Shown: positions 1-12,040 of the stretch, piece after piece
Layout: every line of letters starts with the position of its first letter
Numbering within the stretch: position 1 is the first letter of the stretch
Origin: Oopsacas minuta
Lineage: Eukaryota > Animalia > Porifera
Direction: 5' to 3'
Length of the DNA stretch: 12,040 bases
NCBI GenBank assembly: GCA_024704765.1
Contig: JAKMXF010000196.1
Location: 1-12,040 of the forward strand
Translations under genes and position numbers: made by a program
The notes under the pieces: generated by a model
What the model saw: only the letters and a program-made list of their open reading frames with translations
Databases searched by the model: none
Told to the model about the DNA's origin: nothing

Positions 1-343
1 GGCTCTTGCTGACACTAAACCTGTCTACTAGGGTCACAACATCTATATACGGCAACTTCATTTTCTAACGTCCATACATAAAGTTTACCTTTGACAAGTC
101 CCTTGTGTGATGGCCATTATCAACTACTGCCCTGTATTATCTTATAAAATAGTCACTTGTCTCAATGGTAAACTTTTCTAGACAACTGGCGCTGGCACGA
201 ACCTCAAATTACTACCACGTATTTCCAAAAATGAATTATTGTCGTTGAAGAACAACCTCAGAATGTGTGTAAAATATACTAAAAATGCCCAATTAAAGTC
301 ATAAGCGACTCCACTCTCATGAAAGTTTTTTTCGGGCCAACGA

Positions 344-447
344 TCTATATTACTAAATCTCAATTGTTGTTTGTTTGTTTGTTTGTCCGTTGGATACCTC
401 GAGGCACAATGCGCCGAGTTCATCGCGAAGCGACGAGCCTTTGCTCG
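344..447 (+). mobile_element. Tiny non-autonomous Helitron-like element (104 bp)
   Basis: Starts with TC (A|TCTATATTACTAAA), contains a (GTTT)n tract, has a TCGC-GAA-GCGA hairpin (423-433) 14 nt before the end, and ends CTCG|T (one mismatch from CTAG). The paralogous empty site near 9063 shows insertion between A and T with no target duplication. Confidence 0.72.
366..386. repeat. (GTTT)n microsatellite inside the Helitron-like element
   Basis: gttgtttgtttgtttgtttgt read directly. Confidence 0.85.
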
Positions 448-935
448 TATTTCCTCTAATGAGCTGTACGACAAATTAGGTACATAAGGCCTCACAAATG
501 ATTATGAATTTTGGACCAGGGATGCACGACCTAACCAAAGTGAAATTAACAAATATGTTGCCTACTAGTTATAATCATCATAACTCGGTATAATAAAGTA
601 TTCTAGGGTATATATTCTTTACCCTACAGACATTTGTCTTATTTCATACATTTCCCTAATGAAATACGTGAAAGTACCAATCCATGCATCTTGGGTAAAG
701 GATTCACATCATATTCCTCTAGCTGACGAATTATCCATTCTACTCCTCGCCTAAATAACATGTATCATAAAACTAAAAAATACAATACGTACATCGTGTT
801 CTAAGTATAACTACAGGGGAACCTCGTAAATACATAAATATGGCAAGGGTAATACTATTTACCCGATTATATGTACAAATGATCAAACTAAATCAAGTCT
901 CTATAACGGTTATCTAATTGGTATTACTGTTAATA

Positions 936-983
936 CGAACTCTGGTTTAAAGCAAATAATATTTTTGCTTTAACCAGAGTTCG
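936..983. repeat. Near-perfect 20-bp stem-loop
   Basis: CGAACTCTGGTT(T)AAAGCAAA, loop TAATATT, then TTTGCTTTAACCAGAGTTCG: 20 pairs with one bulged T. Confidence 0.9.
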
Positions 984-1217
984 GATTGTGGAGATCGCCA
1001 TAGTTTTCATAAAACATTTGAGCACTCGGAAATCTCCGTCAGCCCAGACCAGGAGTTTACTCAGAGTCCAGGACCTACCTAGAAACTACCATCTATGGAT
1101 ATTACAAGATATTTTGATTTACTAGTAGTACTTCAGTAATACTCAAGCGATAAACATATTTTCACCTTCAAGCAGGATTAGCTCTCCATGACTCAAATAA
1201 TCTATTCATTGTTAGTT

Positions 1218-1941
1218 CAGGGCTGGATTTTCCTGGTTCACTGCCCTGACTTATGGCGTCCGCGTGACTCAATATGTGAATAACCTCTTAGAATTCCACT
1301 GCAATAGTGCTTACATTCAATTACAATCATACGGATTGAAATTCCCAAGGCAACCCTTATGATAGCCGTGGGAACGGAATCTCAATTCCCATTCTGATTC
1401 CTTTCTGACCGCACCCCTGCTACAGCTCCATCAGCCCCCGGCTTAATCTGGCCCTGGCTCATAGGCATAAAGTTTGTCATTGTGGGGAGAGCCCCACACT
1501 TTTCTCTCCGTACTGTAGATGTAAAGCTGGAAATCTACCAAAAACTGAGGCTTGTTTTCGTGCTTTTTCTACTGAGCATCAAGAACTGATGGCCAATCAT
1601 AAATTCCATCCTGAGTCATGCATTGACATGTTATGCCATCTCTATATATACATTAATCAGGGGCAAGAAACCGAGTACTGCTGGTTTCAGAGTGGTCCGA
1701 CGTCGCTGTACCACCTTTAAGTATTGCAAGCTCTACTATAGCTATACCACATCTATCGGTTCGAAATATACAAATCGTTAATAATTTTGTATGGCATTTA
1801 TAATGCCGTAACATTGCAATCAGTGCTGAGACCCCAAGTTACCCCCCAGTCGCCGGCCCTGTATGGGCCTACCCCAAAAATTGATATAAAAATTTTAAGT
1901 ATCCAAGCCCCTCCTGATACTACGCTCTGGCTACGGCCCTG
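1218..1941. mobile_element. Cluster of orphan hAT-like terminal sequences (MITE debris)
   Basis: CAGGGCTGGATTTT at 1218. Ends whose reverse complements read CAGGGGTGCG (1419), CAGGGCCAGATTAAG (1456), CAGGGCCGGCG (1861) and CAGGGCCGTAGCCAG (1941). CAGGG starts are typical of hAT TIRs. No matching 8-bp TSD pair found. Confidence 0.5.
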
Positions 1942-2527
1942 CATGGATCCCTGTTAAACCTAAGAGCACCCAATCATTCATTTCTGTTTCAGGCTGTGAT
2001 GTAGAAAGCGGTGTTATATTGGTTCCAAATGTAGAGAGGTGAAAATCAATTGATGACATTCAAGTTCGTTCAATGAAGATAAGGCTTGATCAGACTGGGA
2101 TACTTACTTCCAGGACCGCAATAGTCGACTTACTATACAGTAATAATGTATTTTATAAGCCTAATCTAAAATTAAATGCGCAAAACCCTAATACTAGTTA
2201 TTCGCAATAATGGCACACTATGTCAGTATATTAATTGAGTCTTTTTAAAAGTGGCAGTATCATAATATTAGTACAGAAGGTAAAAGGAATTTCTAGAATT
2301 TACTCCAAACAGTCATAGACATGTGTCCAATAGGGGGGCGAAATCGTTGGCGTTTAAAGTTCGTTAGTCCTCAAAGATGTGCTTAACAGTCCAACGAATT
2401 TATCCCATATTTCTTGGCTTCGCTTTCCCTTACATTGGAAATGAAAATATTTTTACAACAAAATAAATAATGAATAATAAGTATTTGTGGAATATAGTTA
2501 GAATTGTTAGTTTCTAATGTATAAGTA

Positions 2528-3730
2528 TTAAATGAATGGTAATTTGGTGAGTGTAGATACTATATACATTGTTTGTATTGAAATCTGTCTGCCAGGTTAA
2601 AAGTTCCTATCTAACATCAGACTATTCGCAAAAGTCAGTATACGAGCAAAATCTTCGTTACCAGCAGTTTCATAAGCCTCTGAGAATGCATTTACGGACC
2701 AAGACCCCTTGCTGGTTTCTCTATACGCCTCATAATCCGGAACACACGAGTACGCCACCAGGAAGTCACTCTCTTTCATCGCAGCTGGGTAGGTAACAAA
2801 ATTTTCTGGGGTGGAGTCTGTCTCAACTTGGTCTCTTGATTTACCCCTGCAGGCCTCAATCAATGAAACTTTTGGTTTGGAAATCAATTCTGGTATTTGT
2901 AGCATCGCGATTATCTCACTTACTGAAACATATTTGTAATCTTCACATAATATTTTATCACCTTCAAGACCATGACTTGAAATTGCTATGAAAATACTTG
3001 ACAATTCCTTATGTGTATCTATTGCTTGCTTTACGTTAGTCAAATAGTCTAGCCGTGTAGCGTTTGCTATTGATATTATACATAGTTGCATTTTGTTGAA
3101 TAAATTATGGAATGTTATCGATCATTTCTTGCACTATTTCTAAGTTGGCCGTTAGCAAATTTTTCGTCACAAGAATTGTGCCAAGTCCTTTGTAATTCAA
3201 CCTTTCGGAAAACTTATACTTCGGGATTTTGCTCGTAACTTTTATGAGAGATTCAGATACCAGCGGTGTAGGGGGTTGAGTAATACCCAGATTCATTACA
3301 CACTGTATTTGTAAGACGCGTAACTTGCATAGCTCGATAAATGAGAATTTGTGGATTTCTTTCATATCTTCAGGCCTAATAAGGGTTACGACACGAATGG
3401 TTTCGACGCCTAGTTCAATGAATAGATTGATTCTAGGCTCGAATTTGTTTTCTTTGAAAATATCTCGCCATGTTCGTTGCTTGAAATCATTTATATAATT
3501 TAAAATTTCTGAATTTGTGATTTGTAATTTCCTCTCTAGATGAGAAATCTTAGTCTCACATTCCATATTTTTCTCAGCTAGATCCAAATTCTTTGACTCC
3601 AATTTTGGAATAGAGCTTCAATTCTCTCAAAAGTATCTCCGAATTCTTGACCCACCAATTCTGCAATGAATTTGGACAAATCTTTTATTGACGCTTGTTG
3701 AGGCTTGAATCCTAAATCATTTAAAGTCAT
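2528..3730 (-). pseudogene. Caspase-family (peptidase C14A) gene with N-terminal coiled coil and SAM-like domain; two frameshifts and one premature stop
   Basis: ORF 2597-3091 has IFIAISSHG (His, 2972-2974), KPKVSLIEACRG (Cys, 2849-2851), DFLVAYS, AYRE and GSW. ORF 3105-3602 ends with the p20 start YKF..KGLGTILV and joins ITFHNLFNKM by a +1 shift near 3120. TAA at 2597-2599 is followed in frame by PGRQISIQTMYIVSTLTKLPFI* (typical caspase STLTK tail). An upstream frame from ATG 3730 (MTLNDLGFKPQQASIKDLSKFIAELVG...) joins by a 1-nt deletion in the T-run at 3603-3606. Confidence 0.9.
3303..3473 (-). other. Putative SAM (sterile alpha motif)-like domain within the caspase gene
   Basis: TWRDIFKENKFEPRINLFIELGVETIRVVTLIRPEDMKEIHKFSFIELCKLRVLQIQ follows the SAM pattern W(L)..+.L..Y...F...G+D....L..L..EDL..+GI...G...KL by eye. 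Not confirmed by HMM. Confidence 0.5.
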
Positions 3731-3770
3731 TTTATATTATTTAAAATCATTTTACATCATTCTAAATCAT
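3711..3770. repeat. 10-bp minisatellite, 6 degenerate copies, overlapping the caspase start codon
   Basis: cctaaatcat/ttaaagtcat/tttatattat/ttaaaatcat/tttacatcat/tctaaatcat. Confidence 0.8.
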
Positions 3771-4019
3771 TGAATATTTTTTGTTTCATTTTATATAATT
3801 TCATCATTTTTTGCTTATATTCGCAGATGAGCATCTTCGAAACAAGCTAATTATTTAACACTAGCGCCCTTCGCTTGCTAGGTCGCTGTGCAGTGCGGCT
3901 AACCATGTGATTTTTCAAAAATCCAAAAAGGTGGCAATGGCATCATAATTTCGTCAGGTGTGAATTTTCGTCAAGACTCAAACCTGTCCGAGTCAGGCCT
4001 AAATACCCCTCCCTGCATG

Positions 4020-4035
4020 GCAGAAATCAGCCCTG
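4020..4035 (-). mobile_element. Orphan hAT-like TIR end
   Basis: GAAATCAGCCCTG (reverse complement CAGGGCTGATTTC) resembles CAGGGCTGGATTTT at 1218. The 8-bp flanks differ (tgttagtt vs gggtgtac). Confidence 0.4.
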
Positions 4036-4050
4036 GGGTGTACACTAAAG

Positions 4051-4052
<2 letters not shown>

Positions 4053-4101
<49 letters not shown>
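4053..4101. repeat. (TTA)n microsatellite, about 16 units
   Basis: Uninterrupted TTA run read directly. Confidence 0.97.
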
Positions 4102-4102
<1 letters not shown>

Positions 4103-4170
4103 TATCATTATTATTTAAATTGTACAATAATTCAGATTATAGAGAGGAAGTGAATATTAGTTTTCCCATA

Positions 4171-4673
4171 TCCGGGTGATTCAAAAAACATGCAACCCAA
4201 AAGTAAATATTTGCAGTGAAGACAATTCTTAATCAAACTCAATCAAACTCAGAACATACGTAAAATATCTATATTTTTAGTACATATTAAAAATTCAGCG
4301 TACTACAGTCAATATTTTATGAATTAGAGCAAATGTTCCAAATGACCTCATTTGAGTTCTGTACATTTCTTGAGTCGTACCACCAAGTTGTTCATGACAT
4401 TTTTGCATACAGTGGTCGGAATCTTTCTAATTTCTTCTCTGATGTTTTCCTTCAACTCGCTGATGGTTCTAGGCTTAGTAGAATAAACTCGGTCTTTAAA
4501 ATAGCCCCACAAGTAGAAGTCAGGAGGGTTTAAGTCGGGGCTATAGGAGGCCCACTCAAAATTCGTCTTGAGACTGATGACTCTTGCTCCAAAGTGTTCT
4601 TTGAGCCAGTCCCTGGAAAAATTTGAGGTGTGTGAGCTCGCTCCATCTTGTTGGAACCAAATGTGATTCAGAA
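4171..4673 (-). mobile_element. 3' part of a Tc1/mariner DD41D (rosa-type) transposon, truncated by the gap
   Basis: Candidate TIR TA|TCCGGGTGATTCAAAAAACATG at 4169-4192, followed by the transposase C-terminus at 4324-4673. Confidence 0.8.
4324..4673 (-). pseudogene. DD41D Tc1/mariner transposase, C-terminal 116 codons (missed by the ORF track)
   Basis: Manual translation: LNHIWFQQDGASSHTSNFSRDWLKEHFGARVISLKTNFEWASYSPDLNPPDFYLWGYFKDRVYSTKPRTISELKENIREEIRKIPTTVCKNVMNNLVVRLKKCTELK*GHLEHLL*. There are 41 residues between the QQD Asp and the PPD Asp. In-frame TGA at 4348-4350 replaces the usual Gly of GGH.EH. Confidence 0.92.
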
Positions 4674-5462
4674 NNNNNNNNNNNNNNNNNNNNNNNNNNN
4701 NNNNNNNNNNNNNNNNNNNNNNNNNNNNNNNNNNNNNNNNNNNNNNNNNNNNNNNNNNNNNNNNNNNNNNNNNNNNNNNNNNNNNNNNNNNNNNNNNNNN
4801 NNNNNNNNNNNNNNNNNNNNNNNNNNNNNNNNNNNNNNNNNNNNNNNNNNNNNNNNNNNNNNNNNNNNNNNNNNNNNNNNNNNNNNNNNNNNNNNNNNNN
4901 NNNNNNNNNNNNNNNNNNNNNNNNNNNNNNNNNNNNNNNNNNNNNNNNNNNNNNNNNNNNNNNNNNNNNNNNNNNNNNNNNNNNNNNNNNNNNNNNNNNN
5001 NNNNNNNNNNNNNNNNNNNNNNNNNNNNNNNNNNNNNNNNNNNNNNNNNNNNNNNNNNNNNNNNNNNNNNNNNNNNNNNNNNNNNNNNNNNNNNNNNNNN
5101 NNNNNNNNNNNNNNNNNNNNNNNNNNNNNNNNNNNNNNNNNNNNNNNNNNNNNNNNNNNNNNNNNNNNNNNNNNNNNNNNNNNNNNNNNNNNNNNNNNNN
5201 NNNNNNNNNNNNNNNNNNNNNNNNNNNNNNNNNNNNNNNNNNNNNNNNNNNNNNNNNNNNNNNNNNNNNNNNNNNNNNNNNNNNNNNNNNNNNNNNNNNN
5301 NNNNNNNNNNNNNNNNNNNNNNNNNNNNNNNNNNNNNNNNNNNNNNNNNNNNNNNNNNNNNNNNNNNNNNNNNNNNNNNNNNNNNNNNNNNNNNNNNNNN
5401 NNNNNNNNNNNNNNNNNNNNNNNNNNNNNNNNNNNNNNNNNNNNNNNNNNNNNNNNNNNNNN
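4674..5462. other. Assembly gap (789 N)
   Basis: Run of N. ORFs spanning it are artefacts. Confidence 1.
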
Positions 5463-6109
5463 CAAGTCTCTACGTATATTTTGAGATCTCAACTATTTGT
5501 TTACTTTATATTCATAAATACAACAATAAATTTGCATATGAGAAACTTGACAATTCGTTGAAATTCGGATTCAATTTACCTGATTACCCCAATGTAATTG
5601 TTTGCTTTCTTATATCGTCAACAGAAGGATAGAATTGTGTAAACTTTAGACCACAAATCTATATAAATACTGATAAAATTCAGTGACATTTCAATTGTCA
5701 AAGTCTATAATCCAGGGATTCTTAGAAATGTCCAAAAATGCCAATCTCAGCCTCCAAGAATCTGCGTTGGTCTCTCTCACTACGGAAATAGTTCAACGCA
5801 TGCACATCAGATGGGCATTTTGCGGAATAAATCCACCTGTATTTGACCCAACTGACTTGTATGTCATTGTCCTTGGCTCGCTTCACTCGTGGACAGGGCA
5901 GCAAAGAAGTCGCCTTTGTCGCCGCCTCGCTTATCGCTGTTGTATAGCTAATCGGCGTGCGACCTCCTCGTGCTGTTATTCTCCCTGGGCACGTCTTCGA
6001 GAATCTTCTCTAAGGCCTTCCGATCCCAGTTGTCTTAGCGAGAGTTAGTTAATTTTGTTGGTGGTCTATTGTGTAACTTATAGGGCAGGGACACCTGGAT
6101 ATCGGCCTT

Positions 6110-6600
6110 TTGGAGAGAAATTTGGCTGAAATTTCGGTTTGTAAAATTTACAAAACGGGGAGTTTGGAATTTTATCAATCATCCTATGTCAATGGTCTTG
6201 CCAAGCATTATTTCATTGTTTGCGACCACTGTCGACATTTTCCGACTTTTACTCATTCCCTAAGTCCCCTTCCAGTGATTGCGACTATAAAATAATGTTT
6301 GAGCTTAAAGCTACCGTGAAATTTAGATATTGAATGAATACATATTATATACAACACTGAAGTACGTATTGCTTAACAAACAAATATTTAAGGGAACGGG
6401 TACTTCTAAACGATCAGAAGAATATATTCCCTGCCCTGAGGCCAGCTCCTATGAATCTTAATGTTGTGAAGAAGATAAATAGGCGATATACCTTTTCCTC
6501 TTCTCCTATTCTTCCCCGACTCTCTTATCGTCCGCCAGAGGTTTTCCAACCTCATCACACCCCATTTCCTATTTATGGACCTTCCCAAAAGCTGCTTTCA
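6110..6600 (+). pseudogene. Possible Mutator-like transposase N-terminal relic
   Basis: LAEISVCKI(Y)KTGSLEFYQSSYVNGLAKHYFIVCDHC resembles the C..C...L....GLA...+.C..C motif of Mutator-like transposases. A downstream frame gives FLFMDLPKS (compare F..MDLP). Recalled motif only; several stops. Confidence 0.3.
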
Positions 6601-7076
6601 ATGAAAACTAGCAAAAGGTATAAGCACCAATGGCGAAAATTTTCCATCCGAAGAAAACTTCTAAGACCAGGCAGACTATTGATACAAACATACAATAGAC
6701 CAGTACCTCTTCCTAAAAGAAGGAAATCTTTAACTCGTAAAAATTTGTATTCATTATCTACAATTTTCTCTTTCTATTTCTTCTTTTGTCATTTATCTTC
6801 AAAGATGGTAGTATGAAGAGCTTAAGGTAAGCTTGACAGAAACTTGATCGTAGCCTCGTTGGGAAATTTGAGAAGAAAAGCTAATATAATGTTATTTATA
6901 CGATGTCTTGCTACAGGTAACCTGTCAATATAACCCTACTCATAAGCAATGGTGACCAAAGGGTTCCAAAACCTGGGTATTTTGTGGACATACATTGATA
7001 AAACAAGTAAAAAATTTGTATTGGCTAGGTGATTACATAATAGAACAGGGCAAGTGTACAATGCCCACCCTACCAA

Positions 7077-9019
7077 CAGGCGCGTCGTAAAGTGGGGGGA
7101 TGGGGGTACTCATCCCCCCCCACGTTTAGACAGAGGGGGATAATCCCCCTCTAATTGTGAGTGAGTATTAAATTAGTTTTGAATTTATTAGAGCATTCTG
7201 CCAATTTAAGAGGGATATAATTTACAATAGTTTACACCCTCTGATCTGCATTCTCGATACCTGTTGGATAATAATAATAAACCAACTACGATGGGTGGGT
7301 GGGTTATCTCACCCTTCATTGTCTGTTTATAAGGATGTTTCACCAATTCATTCACAAAAAGAATTGCTCTAATTAAACTCATAACCAAGTTAAATTGATA
7401 AACTTGGTCTCATGTGATAGATATTGCTTTGACATTTATGTAAACAAAGACATAAACGGATACAACTATACGAAATTATTTTAGAATTAGTAAATTTAAA
7501 GTTAGAACATTTACGATAACGTGTTTAAGCGGATAAGACATAAAATTCAACTAATCGTTTAAGATATCCACTTGCTATGGATCCAACCTGACTTTCAGTT
7601 GCTTGTGTTTCAATCGCTGCCAATGCATCCAAAATTACACCAAATTGTCGATACAATCCCGAAAGTGCAGTATATTTAACTGTGAAACGAGTAGGGCAGA
7701 GGGGTCAAATGTGGGTCTGTGGATTATCTAACTCCAATGCAACTTTCTGCACAATTGCACAACGTTTCGGGGAATGACGAAGGAAAGTGATTAGGTTGTT
7801 GACCAAGTGTAGAAAGTCACGCATTAGAGAGACAGCCTTGACAACATCTTGAACTGCGAGATTAATACAATGCATATGACAGTGAGTACTTAGGGCACTT
7901 GGAGCCACCTCAGAAATTCGAGCAGCTACACCATTTGAATGACCACTGAACGATGAGGCACCATCAAATGTCATCCCGAAGCAGTATGACAAACTAATAC
8001 CGATGCGAAGGAGGGCGTCTTTGATTGCTGAAAATATTTATTCAGCATCACACTTATCAAGAGCATAGAAGCCAAGCACTCTTTCATTGGGAGATATGTC
8101 ACTATCTACAGTACGAAAACAGATGCTCAGTTGTTCAATCCGAGAAATATCAGACGTCTCGTCAGCTATCAATCCATAGAAACAATTACGCATTTGACGT
8201 GTAAATAATCGCACAATATGGTTCGCCATCATCTCTAGAATTTCTTCTTGTACTTCGATCGAAGTCCATGAAATTGCTTCCAGGAGCCATTCCTGTAAAT
8301 CTTTTGAATCAGAAGCACCTAGAACTAAGAGTTGCTTAAAATTAGATTCCGAGTCAATATGACCACGTGTAGGCAGTCCTTGGCGTGCTAAGTATCTCAA
8401 ACTTGTGAAAATCTGGATCAGACACTCGCGGGCAACTTTCTTGTTTGCTGTTTGTTGATCAATAAGTTTTCAACGACGCTCGTCCCAGAAATTGTGTTTG
8501 TGAATTTTATCACGTATGAGCGATGTGTATGAGAAGATTCATGAATCTTAAATTTCTCAGTAGCTTTTTTCCAATTCGTAAATCTAATAGTAACAAAAGC
8601 TTCATCTCCCTTGCTATTACGTAATGAGTGAACTGAGTATACTTGCCTACAAGGATGACAAATGCTGCCTTAAGTTCTGAGTCCTACTCCAGCCATGCGA
8701 ATTGTTCAAACCATACAGGTAAAAGCTTCCTCTTAGAATTAGGGTCAGTTGGGAAAAATTTATCTTTCGGTTGGTTTTGCAAGATTCTCTGTCTTTTGGA
8801 TTAGGCTCATCATCTTGATATGTTGATTGACTTGCCATTAAAGAAATCTAATTTGATTGTACAATAAACAAGGAATTTACGTCCCAATGCATTCTAGTAA
8901 ATAATAATAAAACACATGCTAGTATGTAAAGATCAAAACTTCGCTTTTCACGTATTTACCTAATACTAAACAAAACGATTTCGCCCCCCCCCCCAATCTG
9001 TTTCAAATCGACGCCTCTG
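7077..9019 (-). mobile_element. Degenerate, 3'-deleted hAT transposon
   Basis: Ends CAGGCGCGTCG (7077) and CGACGCCTCTG (9019) match at 9/11 as inverted repeats, have G/C-run subterminal regions and enclose a hAT transposase relic. Flanks cctaccaa and gctatgta are not a clean TSD. Confidence 0.6.
7560..8838 (-). pseudogene. hAT-family transposase, ZMYM1-like (TTF zinc finger + DUF4371 + catalytic core), with multiple stops and frameshifts
   Basis: WFEQFAWLE*...AF/CHPC...FTNWKKATEKFKIHESSHTH (TTF-type finger), LRYLARQGLPTRGH, GLIADETSDIS..EQLSIC, FDGASSFSG, HCHMHCINLAVQD, LCPTRF. No C-terminal hATC dimerisation domain seen. Confidence 0.92.
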
Positions 9020-9030
9020 GCTATGTAACA

Positions 9031-9197
9031 ACCTAATTTGTCGTACAGCTCATCAGAGGAAATATTTATGGCCCGAATCAAACTTTCATGACAGTGGAGT
9101 CGCCTATGACTTTACTCATGCATTTTTAGATAGAATTTTCACACATTCTGAGGTTGTTCTTCACAACAATAATTCACTTTTGGAAATATGTGGTAGT
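9031..9197 (-). repeat. Dispersed repeat copy B (empty-site paralog of 211-481)
   Basis: The reverse complement reads ...TTCGGGCCATAAA|TATTTCCTCTGATGAGCTGTACGACAAATTAGGT, continuous across the point where copy A carries the 104-bp insertion. Confidence 0.9.
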
Positions 9198-9666
9198 AGG
9201 TTCAAATTCTTCAATATTATTTAAGGCCCACTTGTGAGGCGTGAATTCAACTATTTGTAAACCCGCGGTGTTAAAGGTTACTAGAAATAGATCTTTAAAA
9301 ACAATTTTATTATATGTCAGTGTAATTTTGGTGGCATATTCAATAACGTTCTGAATCACATCATTTGAGGGTAATCTGACACTTCGTCCCCAAAATGAAT
9401 TCTCACTGAGGGTATTGTATCAGAGGTATTTGTCATATAGAAGGAATTTTCGGGCTTTTCTTACTTTATTTAAGAATTTACAATTGGATTGGTGTCAAGG
9501 TTTGCCATGGGTGTTGCTCGAATATCTGATCAGCTCTGGTTGTTGGTTAGGGTCTTTGGAAGCGATATCTGGTAGATTGTAGGACAAATTAGTTATTGCT
9601 TATAATTGTTGTATTTGGAATTTTTCTCACTGTTTTCGTATTGGCGCATGTACCAATACAAAATAA

Positions 9667-9980
9667 TGAGAAGATTCCAAGATTACAAATATTGGATTGG
9701 ACCTGGAAGAGATTAGAGACAAATACAAGGACATATGTAACATTCTGCATGGCGTCCGTACGGTCTTTACAAATTTATTCAATCAACATTCTCCTGGCCC
9801 TGAATATGATGTAAAATGATTTAATATCATGGTGAATCATATTCAGGGCCAGGAGGATGTTGATTAAATAAATTTGTGAAGACAACACGGGTGCCATGTA
9901 GAGAGGTACATATATCGTTGTACTTGTCTCTAATCTCTTCCAGTTCCAATCCAATATTAATAATCTAGGAATCTTTTTCA
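9667..9980. repeat. Imperfect inverted repeat, arms about 9667-9810 and 9836-9980, 25-nt spacer
   Basis: The left arm GATTCCAAGATTACAAATATTGGATTGGACCTGGAAGAGATTAGAGACAAATAC...CCTGGCCCTGAATATGAT matches the reverse complement of the right arm, roughly 80-85% by eye. The track ORFs 9596-9814(+) and 9775-9981(-) are mirror translations. Confidence 0.95.
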
Positions 9981-10260
9981 CTTAATTGACTCTCAAATAG
10001 TGCAATTTTTTGGTTGTTTGGTGAATTTTGGAATTAGTGATGTGTAGTTGCCTCTCTAGGTCTGAATCTTAGTTTCACATTCTATTTTCTTGTTCTCTAA
10101 ATCTAAATTTTTCTGAGTCAGATCAAAACCTTTTGATTCCAATTTTTGGAATCTGGCTTCGATTCGGTCAGAGGTGGTCTCTAATTCTTTACCCACCAAT
10201 TTGGCAATGGTGTTTGACAAGTCCTTGATGGAAGATTGCGGAGGCTTGAATCCTAAAAGT
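9827..10260 (-). pseudogene. Degenerate coiled-coil gene sharing its N-terminal module with the caspase gene
   Basis: Manual translation LLGFKPPQSSIKDLSNTIAKLVGKELETTSDRIEARFQKLESKGFDLTQKNLDLENKKIECETKI/DLERQLHITNSKI.../IALFESQLSEKDS*IINIGLELEEIRDKYNDICTSLHGTRVVFTNLFNQHPPGPEYDSP*. The first part aligns to about 3500-3718. At least two frameshifts and one stop. Confidence 0.8.
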
Positions 10261-11040
10261 ATAAAATCACCATATCTTCAGAGTAAAAGCATTGTATACA
10301 CGAAACTATGGAATGAACCTTTTCTAGAAAGGGATTATGTAAACAAGTCGGGCATTATTAAATAGTTATATATTTCAGAAATGGATTGACGACAAGTGCA
10401 TGAATTCATAAAAGCAAATTTTCTTTGAATATGTCAACCTATTTGCTTTATAACCAATTATTTGGAGAAATGGATCCCACATTGAGGCTTCTAAAACTTG
10501 TAACTGTAACTGCGATTCTAATGCCGAAAAACTTAATGTTTTTCTTAAAGAAATTTTATACAAATATATATTTATAGTGGTAAAGTTGGCACGTTCCTGA
10601 CTCACAGTAGTGAGGATGGAAAACATATATTAGCAATAACGTACTGTTTGATATAAGAATATAATTAGGAATAATGTACCCTTTGATATAGGAATGAAAA
10701 CTAAGTAGTCTTAATAGACTCATCATAACTTTTTACTGTAAATTTATGTATGCAAACCATTGGAACCTGAGATTTCAGTAATTAATGCAGGATTCTTACT
10801 CGTTTATAAGATTCGGTAGCACGCCAACATATGTTATTGAATTAAGGGATCACTCAGCGTATTCAATCGGTATACAAGTATGCAAGTTCTGTGTTCCGAA
10901 GATTTTGCAATTTGTTAATCAGAATCGTCTTGATAAATCATATTAATGTAAAACTAATACAATGGTCAGCGATAAGTCTACAAACATACCTGAAGGTTTG
11001 TCACATGTGATTGGGAGGATGTCGATTAAATAGACTTGCA

Positions 11041-11940
11041 CAGTCAAGGGACATAAGTATTCGACCACACAAATTTACTATCATAAATTGTATACTCTTT
11101 CCCGCTCCTATTTATTGTGTAGTCTATATTCGTAGCTGCAATCTAGTAATTTGCATAGAATAACATATGTTTTTCAAGAATTTCAAAAAATATTTTTGAT
11201 TTACACTTTTTGAAGGTGTTAATTATTAATAATTATTAGATGATTATTGATACTCAAAATATGTGGTCATTCAAAACCAATTAAGAATCTATAATTTCTG
11301 ACTTGATATTTGAATTCTACATGGGCGAGTTCCCGCAGATTGAATTTCCAATGGGATTGAACAATTTTTGCCAAAGTTATAGAAGAATTTCAATTTGTGC
11401 CATTTGTGCCACCTATTGCTAAGGTGGCACAAGTGGCCGCTACCAAGAGGTTATTTTGTAATTCAAGGGTTTGCATAGTAATATCATTCGAAAATATTAC
11501 TTCGACTTATTCCTCCTAACCCTAATTGATTTCCTTGTAGTGGCGCTTTTTCCTGCCACCTGTGCCACGTTTTGCAAAGTGGCACAAATTGAAATTTTGT
11601 ATAACTTTGGTAAAAATTGTTCAATCCCATTGGAAATTTTTATCTGCGGTAACTCGCCTACGTAGAATTCAAATATCAAGTCAGAAATTATAGATTCTTA
11701 ATAGGTTTTGAATTACCACACATTTTGAGTACCAATAATTATCTAATAATTATTAATAATTAACACCTTCAAAAAGTGTAAATCGAAAATATTTTTTTGA
11801 AATTCTTGAAAAACATGTCATTCTATGCAAATTACTACATAGCAGCTACGAATATAGACTGCCCAATTTATAGGAGCGGGAAAGAGTATACAATTTATGA
11901 TAATATATTTGTGTGGTCGAATACTTTTGTCCCTTGACTG
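11041..11940. mobile_element. 900-bp Tc1-like foldback MITE with TIRs of about 390 bp
   Basis: Arms 11041-~11437 and ~11554-11940 are about 90% identical by eye. Terminus CAGTCAAGGGACAAAAGTATTCGACCAC fits the Tc1 CAGT...AAAAGTATT..CAC pattern. Right flank TA, left flank CA. No transposase. Confidence 0.88.
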
Positions 11941-11946
11941 TATATA

Positions 11947-12040
11947 CAGGGTGCGTTTTAAGTTCTGTCCCATAGTCAAATCCTCATAACTTTACTACAA
12001 TAGATCTTTTACTATTTAAACTTTTATACCAGTTTACTAT
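11947..12040 (+). mobile_element. Possible start of another TIR transposon, running off the window
   Basis: TA|CAGGGTG immediately after the MITE, a common mariner/maT/rosa-type TIR start. The partner end is not in the window. Confidence 0.35.

Follow-up and report, generated by a model that had tools for sequence, protein, structure and literature searches.

A probable caspase pseudogene with a SAM prodomain and a mosaic history in the glass sponge Oopsacas minuta

Introduction

Initiator caspases are activated by induced proximity, and according to the prevailing view it is death-fold prodomains that bring this about in all animals. SAM domains are known to associate with themselves and with one another, examples being tankyrase, SARM1 and Eph with SHIP2. 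A locus of the glass sponge Oopsacas minuta raises the question of whether a SAM domain can occupy the place of the death fold in a caspase. The stretch of DNA analysed here, referred to as the window, is the entire 12-kb scaffold JAKMXF010000196.1 of assembly GCA_024704765.1 (bases 1-12040), to which a 164-aa open reading frame of the window was mapped. From its sequence alone, an original prediction had placed at 2528-3730 a damaged gene whose repaired product would consist of an N-terminal amphipathic or coiled-coil region, a SAM-like segment, a Pro-containing linker and a caspase domain.

Our analysis makes it likely that the minus-strand element at 2528-3730 is a glass-sponge caspase pseudogene with a SAM prodomain, that it is a mosaic of two paralogous lineages, and that an N-terminal helical module was joined to it in frame. 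If this is true, a conserved multi-gene family of caspases with SAM prodomains in an early-branching animal lineage would represent an independent solution to the problem of proximity, directly testable with the intact orthologs described below, and the mosaic copies would show a route to such architectures, namely the exchange of prodomains between neighbouring paralogs. The locus itself is of limited value, being a dead copy. What it contributes is a verification at the level of the fold on its own sequence, evidence of a domain swap, and a candidate for an additional oligomerisation module.

Identity and layout of the caspase gene

A caspase-like reading runs continuously along the minus strand from an ATG at 3728-3730 to a stop at 2528-2530, spread over three frames, and three-frame translations, Pfam and PDB matches agree with the gene and the boundaries that had been predicted for it. 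Peptidase_C14 (PF00656) was matched over 2600-3115 with a score of 84.3 bits, the cut-off being 21.4 (E 1.4e-23), and caspase-3 and caspase-7 were the top PDB matches for the caspase part. The catalytic motifs SSHG and EACRG are retained, as is a VETD site between the subunits. The earlier call of a caspase with p20 and p10 holds. In the catalytic pentapeptide Gln is replaced by Glu (EACRG), and the same replacement is found in the closest intact relative, a gene at 4821-6026 of an array contig from another assembly (L004:4821-6026).

Both arginines of the S1 pocket can be located. The arginine contributed by p20 is present in QLRNS within 3121-3165 of the minus strand, a stretch that has a frameshift on either side and is read in the third frame; it is falsely judged missing when the reading is confined to two frames. 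The arginine contributed by p10 lies in YRETSKGSW. Downstream of a premature TAA the same frame remains open for 22 codons and contains the canonical caspase C-terminus STLTK (2543-2557) ahead of the terminal stop. The predicted TQPPTP linker between the prodomain and p20 was also found where expected (Table 1).

Fold of the prodomain

Structural modelling and profile comparisons support a SAM fold for the prodomain, not a death fold. A profile made from the family alignment matched the SAM domain of ARAP2 first among PDB entries (E 8.7e-4 over 66 positions), and the next matches were again SAM domains, with SAMSN1 at 2.3e-3 followed by SASH3, BICC1 and p63. From the family alignment, AlphaFold modelled residues 3252-3524 of the window itself as a five-helix bundle with a long last helix, at a predicted local distance difference test score (pLDDT) of 82.7. 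Nearly all of the top 50 Foldseek matches to this model were SAM domains, and most SAM rows at the head of the list had probabilities of about 0.9-0.99. VIA-align superposed it on 66 of the 67 residues of the SASH1 SAM domain (Z 9.3, root-mean-square deviation 1.7 Å) and returned a SAM domain in each of 50 rows, and in a wide search of 48,161 chains that was independent of Foldseek the top 15 were all SAM domains. No CARD, DED, DD or PYD appeared in the top 50 of either VIA-align or the wide structural search, and neither the pieces of the window nor the intact relatives had a Pfam death-fold match. The five-helix SAM fold that AlphaFold and Foldseek had been expected to return was thus obtained, and the segment modelled neither as a death fold nor as unstructured; the limits first given for it, 3303-3473, proved too narrow, and the domain extends over about 3276-3494. 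A death-fold prodomain was considered as a candidate and rejected, as the top structural matches were SAM domains and death folds were absent from the top 50.

Several results count against the SAM assignment. The Foldseek E-values were weak, at 0.2 and above, as is expected at such a small domain size, and in a small helical domain a Z of about 8-9 is no more than middling. No Pfam SAM model matched the window piece, and within the family SAM_1, SAM_2, SAM_TNK and SAM_EPH matched one or two of 19 members with sub-gathering E-values of about 0.01-0.16, SAM_1 being matched by two of the 19 only (E 0.01). The SAM call is therefore made because the matches are almost exclusively SAM domains and cover the whole domain, and not because of the absolute score, and the sub-threshold Pfam scores point to a very divergent SAM domain. 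Searches with individual pieces were similarly unproductive. Single pieces compared with Pfam gave no SAM domain and only noise (Spc24, Cep57 and DUF7624, E >0.04), phmmer of the middle piece against the PDB gave nothing relevant, and a word-index search with a 168-amino-acid (aa) piece returned no match, the full-length relatives being outside its length window. An ESM Atlas feature search with the middle piece and the helical module returned sub-threshold bacterial rows only.

A family of intact SAM-caspases in tandem arrays

The pairing of SAM and caspase domains is real and conserved, as intact genes of about 400 aa encoding it occur in four ENA assemblies. When 1.8 billion representative proteins were searched with the SAM-bearing piece, five matches were returned, of which the convincing ones were three caspases sharing the N-terminal SAM module: an Oopsacas paralog that is 54% identical (P0001) and two proteins of 412 aa (P0002) and 404 aa (P0004). 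A further member of the family with 414 aa (P0006) came from a later search. At the family loci six to nine intronless caspase genes are arranged in tandem, and most of them open with a helical (SAM) module of about 65 aa that falls into three subtypes, aligned with an invariant Gly. Subtype 1 is exemplified by L004:4821-6026, subtype 2 by P0002 and P0006, and subtype 3 by L004:10471-11589. Arrays with all three SAM subtypes are present in ERZ25072730 (two contigs), ERZ25072740, ERZ25766962 and ERZ20067936. Gene order is shared across the four assemblies (loci L001, L002, L004, L006 and L007): an Autophagy_act_C (Atg3/Atg10-like) gene always has the subtype-2 gene immediately on its upstream side and a subtype-3 SAM-caspase gene on its downstream side. 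A giant fn3 protein comes next in L004 and L006. The array contigs can be attributed to a eukaryotic host, because the neighbouring genes are split by introns.

Intact members consist of the SAM domain of about 65 aa, a disordered linker and the p20 and p10 subunits. In the full-length model of P0006, residues 8-72 form the SAM domain, residues 81-155 are disordered, and residues 160-410 take up a confidently predicted caspase fold in which the loop between the subunits is disordered. The disordered linker has about 75-100 aa in the intact relatives, whereas only about 20 aa are left in the Oopsacas copies. Some array members that are otherwise intact are without catalytic residues (L001 3007-4221 and 4442-5671; L004 6384-7601; L002 1228-2535, 2738-3868 and 4246-5553), the losses of the catalytic His and/or Cys reading SYG or SIG and EASRC, EAICN, ESICD or QACHS. 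Judged from these replacements they are candidate pseudo-caspases, which could serve as SAM-recruited decoys or regulators.

Of the intact relatives that the original prediction had proposed to look for, orthologs were thus found elsewhere, but no intact Oopsacas member was found by searches that could not scan the Oopsacas genome itself. Outside the four assemblies, the nearest proteins were ordinary caspases with 30-35% identity in the caspase half only. The 60 nearest Atlas models combined the caspase with DED, CARD, PYRIN, Dredd_N, kinase, MORN or Sel1, and none of these 60 paired it with SAM. Full-text literature searches revealed no paper on a SAM-caspase, and the Oopsacas minuta genome paper mentions neither caspases nor apoptosis. 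The combination of SAM and caspase is new among caspases with recruitment prodomains and apparently undescribed. Lineage-specific shuffling of domains onto caspases, often in expanded families, is otherwise familiar from the TNFR- and LRR-caspases of amphioxus and the kinase-caspases of arthropods (PMC2575513; Atlas clusters), although the combinations listed for these animals include no SAM-caspase. The amphioxus survey of domain shuffling lists TNFR-, LRR- and death-caspases as well as TIR-SAM proteins, but not a SAM-caspase (PMC2575513).

Relation to known systems and proposed mechanism

In their layout the sponge proteins resemble the initiator caspases, that is, caspase-9, CED-3 and Dronc with a CARD and caspase-8 and -10 with DEDs. 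They share with these an N-terminal domain, in the sponge proteins a putative one, for homotypic interaction, a flexible linker, the His/Cys dyad of family C14A, an inter-subunit Asp site and, probably, proximity-induced dimerisation. In contrast to these enzymes, the sponge prodomain is predicted to be a SAM bundle of five helices in place of the six-helix death fold, the intronless genes stand in tandem arrays, and some members have EACRG or QTCRG as their pentapeptide. A second parallel is offered by the SAM-PARP filaments of tankyrase and by SARM1, in which a tandem-SAM octamer carries a TIR NADase: in both, an enzyme that depends on self-association for its activity carries a SAM domain, and these SAM domains were among our structural matches (8w23, 8aly, 6qwv, 6o0s and 9l2g). 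The sponge enzyme differs from them in being a caspase, its SAM domain has just 9-18% identity with theirs, and polymerisation of the sponge SAM is putative.

By analogy with these systems, association between SAM domains, either by self-polymerisation or through a SAM-bearing partner, would bring the caspase domains of the intact family together, and the gathered zymogens would then dimerise and cleave themselves at the VETD-type linker site. The SAM domain would thus parallel the CARD and DED of initiator caspases. Given that SAM domains oligomerise elsewhere and that initiator caspases are activated by induced proximity, such SAM-driven activation may reasonably be inferred for the intact family. 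The parts that it calls for occur in the intact relatives, namely the SAM fold, a long flexible linker, a caspase domain predicted to be catalytically competent and an Asp inter-subunit site. In the window the mechanism would be inoperative, because the gene is dead.

Alternatively, instead of polymerising with itself, the SAM domain might dock heterotypically onto a SAM-bearing sensor or adaptor, or might serve localisation or inhibition, and the three subtypes would then address three different partners. The close structural matches include SAM domains that form heterodimers (EphA-SASH1, EphA2-SHIP2, ANKS3-ANKS6 and Scm-Sfmbt) besides those that form polymers (tankyrase, SARM1 and BICC1), each array keeps three divergent SAM subtypes side by side, and the exchange of SAM subtypes between caspase clades described below fits a modular address tag. 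However, no partner was found, the search of the representative proteins having yielded family caspases as its only convincing matches. We take this alternative to be possible, short of an even chance, and prefer SAM-driven gathering of the caspase domains as the working model for the intact family.

Two further Oopsacas copies and a probable mosaic origin

Two more broken SAM-caspase copies lie in tandem on the Oopsacas contig JAKMXF010000107.1 (L003), at 7956-8940 and 10034-10348, with about 200 bp of upstream sequence in common. The first, interrupted by a stop ahead of its SAM domain and frameshifted near 8540, corresponds to the 184-aa GenBank protein KAI6658143.1 (LOD99_11129), which is the paralog P0001 recovered above. 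The SAM domain of the second is intact, and an internal deletion links it to NLFNKMQL, followed by a stop. Like the copy in the window, both are broken, have a short linker and combine a type-2 SAM with the same caspase clade; the caspase part is 68% identical to that of the window at the protein level. They differ from it in lacking the N-terminal helical module, in having another upstream region and in carrying their lesions elsewhere.

The two halves of the gene in the window most closely resemble different relatives. The SAM domain of the window is 40-48% identical to that of subtype-2 genes (E down to 6e-16) and matches subtype-1 genes with E-values of 0.003-0.09 only. For the caspase domain the order is reversed, with 50% identity to the subtype-1 gene L004:4821-6026 (E 1.4e-47) as opposed to about 36% to subtype-2 genes (E 1e-22 to 6e-29). 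In the tree of caspase domains the window and the L003 copy lie inside the subtype-1 clade with support of 96/91 and 98/97, and the subtype-2 genes are placed across a 98/97 split from them; constraining the Oopsacas copies to group with the subtype-2 genes was rejected by the approximately unbiased (AU) test (p-AU 0.0009). In the tree of SAM domains, conversely, the Oopsacas copies group with subtype 2 (90/77), and forcing them into the exact clade of the caspase half was 51 log-likelihood units worse (p-AU 1.8e-7). A constraint to the broader eight-gene clade gave a borderline result (p 0.054), and the poorly posed constraint that unites the Oopsacas SAM domains with all type-1 SAM domains against the rest gave p 0.32. 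The SAM alignment is short, and it has to be held against these tests that their clades were named after the trees had been seen.

Because the pairwise scores and both AU tests agree, at least one prodomain exchange between paralogs is indicated. On this sequence comparison, the Oopsacas copies appear to carry a type-2 SAM domain on a caspase domain of the type-1 clade, and at least one swap between neighbouring paralogs must have taken place. Unequal crossing-over within an array of this kind can yield exactly such a mosaic.

The N-terminal helical module

Ahead of the SAM domain, the reading of the window copy includes a module of about 70 aa. The DNA from 3714 to about 3512 is matched only by 10256-10024, likewise in the window, with 76-78% nucleotide identity, and the indel between the two copies comprises exactly 7 codons. 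Over 70 codons, the ratio of nonsynonymous to synonymous substitution rates (dN/dS) between the copies is 0.13 in the annotated frame as compared with 0.90 in both other frames, which argues that the module is genuine coding sequence, now or formerly. It must be set against this estimate that dS is about 1.2, and thus near saturation, over 70 codons only. The module is strongly amphipathic with a period of 3.6 (z 5.6 in the first copy and 3.0-3.6 in the second). At the heptad period of 3.5, residues 31-82 of the first copy give z 2.8 with 79% of the a/d positions hydrophobic, and the second copy gives z -0.5. The amphipathic helix proposed for this region is therefore well founded, and a coiled coil is plausible at most, given the modest z of the first copy and a second copy without heptad signal.

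None of the intact relatives and neither L003 copy has the module, which speaks against its membership in the protein, and a combination of coiled coil, SAM and caspase is consequently represented by one dead copy. Of the three-part protein that had been predicted, the SAM and caspase parts stand, and the coiled-coil part does not extend beyond this decayed copy to any intact relative. It is conceivable that the module was never part of a caspase protein and that a rearrangement in this transposon-rich scaffold brought it, as an exon or fragment from another gene, to a place upstream of an ancestor consisting of SAM and caspase and starting near 3520. The intact relatives without the module have their Met 13-25 residues ahead of the SAM domain, and one of the two L003 paralogs, upstream of which the module is also missing, has a Met exactly at the end of the window's module homology. 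Moreover, the DNA homology between the copies opens right behind TTTAG, which resembles a splice acceptor. An in-frame stop stands a few codons ahead of the second copy, which lacks an ATG and is followed by neither SAM nor caspase. Tc1/mariner and DUF4371 fragments occur on the scaffold, as does a high-copy repeat that lies 85 bp ahead of the caspase ATG.

However, apart from a one-base frameshift, no stop interrupts the frame that leads from the ATG at 3730 across the module and over the junction into the SAM domain. Purifying selection has acted on the module in exactly this frame, and the relatives and one L003 copy have their start Met at the position of the junction (about 3512-3520), as would be expected of an in-frame N-terminal fusion at the ancestral start codon. 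On balance of this sequence evidence we favour a real in-frame fusion as the probable origin, mere juxtaposition retaining a substantial though lesser likelihood. A more far-reaching scenario would combine the fusion with the mechanism proposed above, so that glass sponges would use SAM-SAM-based caspase activation with exchangeable prodomain cassettes, and the Oopsacas cassette together with a coiled coil would have formed a recently functional self-assembling initiator; taken as a whole, we consider this scenario rather unlikely.

Lesions and decay

The gene carries four lesions, three frameshifts and one premature stop, and not the three lesions originally counted, according to a frame map against the relatives and the contigs of four sequencing runs. 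In the second module copy, both halves flanking the equivalent of the A-run at the first frameshift share one frame. The second and third frameshifts are spanned by three chained tblastn matches of intact relatives in frames -3, -2 and -1, and the approximately 15 codons between them lie in the third frame (EKFANGQLRNSARND as compared with ESFDNGHVRLGASND in the relative).

Could these lesions be errors of assembly or sequencing, the animal itself having an intact gene? Two of the three frameshifts fall in homopolymer runs (3603-3606 and 3160-3164), which are typical sites of error, and the scaffold is a small one interrupted by a gap of Ns. In contrast, the stop and the third frameshift lie outside homopolymers, both L003 paralogs are also broken, and a second copy with about 91% identity, seen in run X3, has a one-base deletion of its own. 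Logan contigs from four runs cover every one of the four lesion sites and differ from the scaffold at none of them. All four runs were made on a single sample, which is probably that of the assembly, and their reads accordingly lend no independent support, a reservation that applies to the pseudogene reading as such; their agreement therefore rules out a scaffolding slip and leaves room for a peculiarity of that individual. We regard an intact gene hidden behind errors as highly improbable, and assembly error as the source of the lesions was rejected on the exact match of the four-run contigs at each site.

The caspase half has evolved under purifying selection relative to the L003 paralog (dN/dS 0.23 over 188 codons, dS 0.90), from which it follows that most of the divergence accumulated under constraint and that inactivation came comparatively late. 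The decay of the window copy thus appears to be fairly recent after a mostly constrained history. To be weighed against the overall reading is also that no RNA run containing the stretch was found among the runs searched.

Contigs of run X3 are about 91% identical to 2602-2895 and 2950-3100 and have their own one-base deletion at 2646. This sequence divergence indicates a further, closer decayed gene copy in the sample that lies outside the scaffold.

Features and surroundings of the scaffold

Table 1. Positions of the features annotated in the window, with the basis of each assignment
Feature	Position	Strand	Basis and remarks
Whole intronless caspase pseudogene	2528-3730	-	ATG to terminal stop, about 400 codons; three-frame translations, Pfam and PDB matches, frame map against relatives
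N-terminal amphipathic helical (possibly coiled-coil) module	3512-3714	-	DNA homology from just after TTTAG to the ITNSEI codons; dN/dS; periodicity
SAM domain, predicted five-helix bundle, family subtype 2	3276-3494	-	Family profile against PDB, AlphaFold, Foldseek, VIA, wide structural search
Short Pro-containing linker from SAM domain to p20	3234-3275	-	TQPPTP at 3264-3281; model pLDDT <55 here
Large subunit (p20)	2816-3233	-	His in SSHG (2969-2980); Cys in EACRG (2843-2857); ends with VETD (2816-2827)
Small subunit (p10)	2531-2815	-	Interrupted by premature stop; aligned to caspase-3 and, through the C-terminus, to L003 paralog
Frameshift 1	3603-3606	-	A-run one base shorter than in second module copy; four-run contigs agree
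Frameshift 2	3159-3168	-	At or near A5 run (3160-3164); chained tblastn with L004:4821-6026 and L001:3007-4221
Frameshift 3	3119-3123	-	Frame -2 match stops at 3121, frame -1 match begins at 3121 (tblastn)
Premature TAA	2597-2599	-	22 codons ahead of true end; Tyr in L003 paralog; four runs agree
Second, free-standing module copy	10024-10256	-	21 nt longer (one extra heptad); own frameshift; no SAM or caspase behind it
C-terminal fragment of Tc1/mariner-type DDE transposase	4351-4677	-	Pfam DDE_3, E 0.0025, sub-threshold; truncated by N gap
DUF4371-type transposase-like sequence, two adjacent open reading frame fragments	7705-8400	-	PF14291, E 5e-11 for 8041-8400; decayed mobile element

The scaffold as a whole is decaying and repeat-rich, with abundant transposon debris (Table 1). 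The gap of Ns that truncates the DDE transposase fragment extends from near 4677 to about 5470. Directly downstream of the second module copy, at 9596-9981, there are two open reading frames, one on each strand and each about 70 aa long, whose peptides are almost the same (…WKRLET…LINILLALNM…). Neither had a Pfam match, and the pair forms a tail-to-tail inverted duplication.

Upstream of the caspase gene, contig depth rises from about 130 to thousands at about 3814, and many loose contig ends lie at 3814/3816, 3859/3860 and 3891/3892. The jump in depth and the loose ends therefore place the beginning of the high-copy repeat about 85 bp ahead of the caspase ATG (window 3814-3900 onward). This repeat is followed by an (ATT)n microsatellite at 4044-4103.

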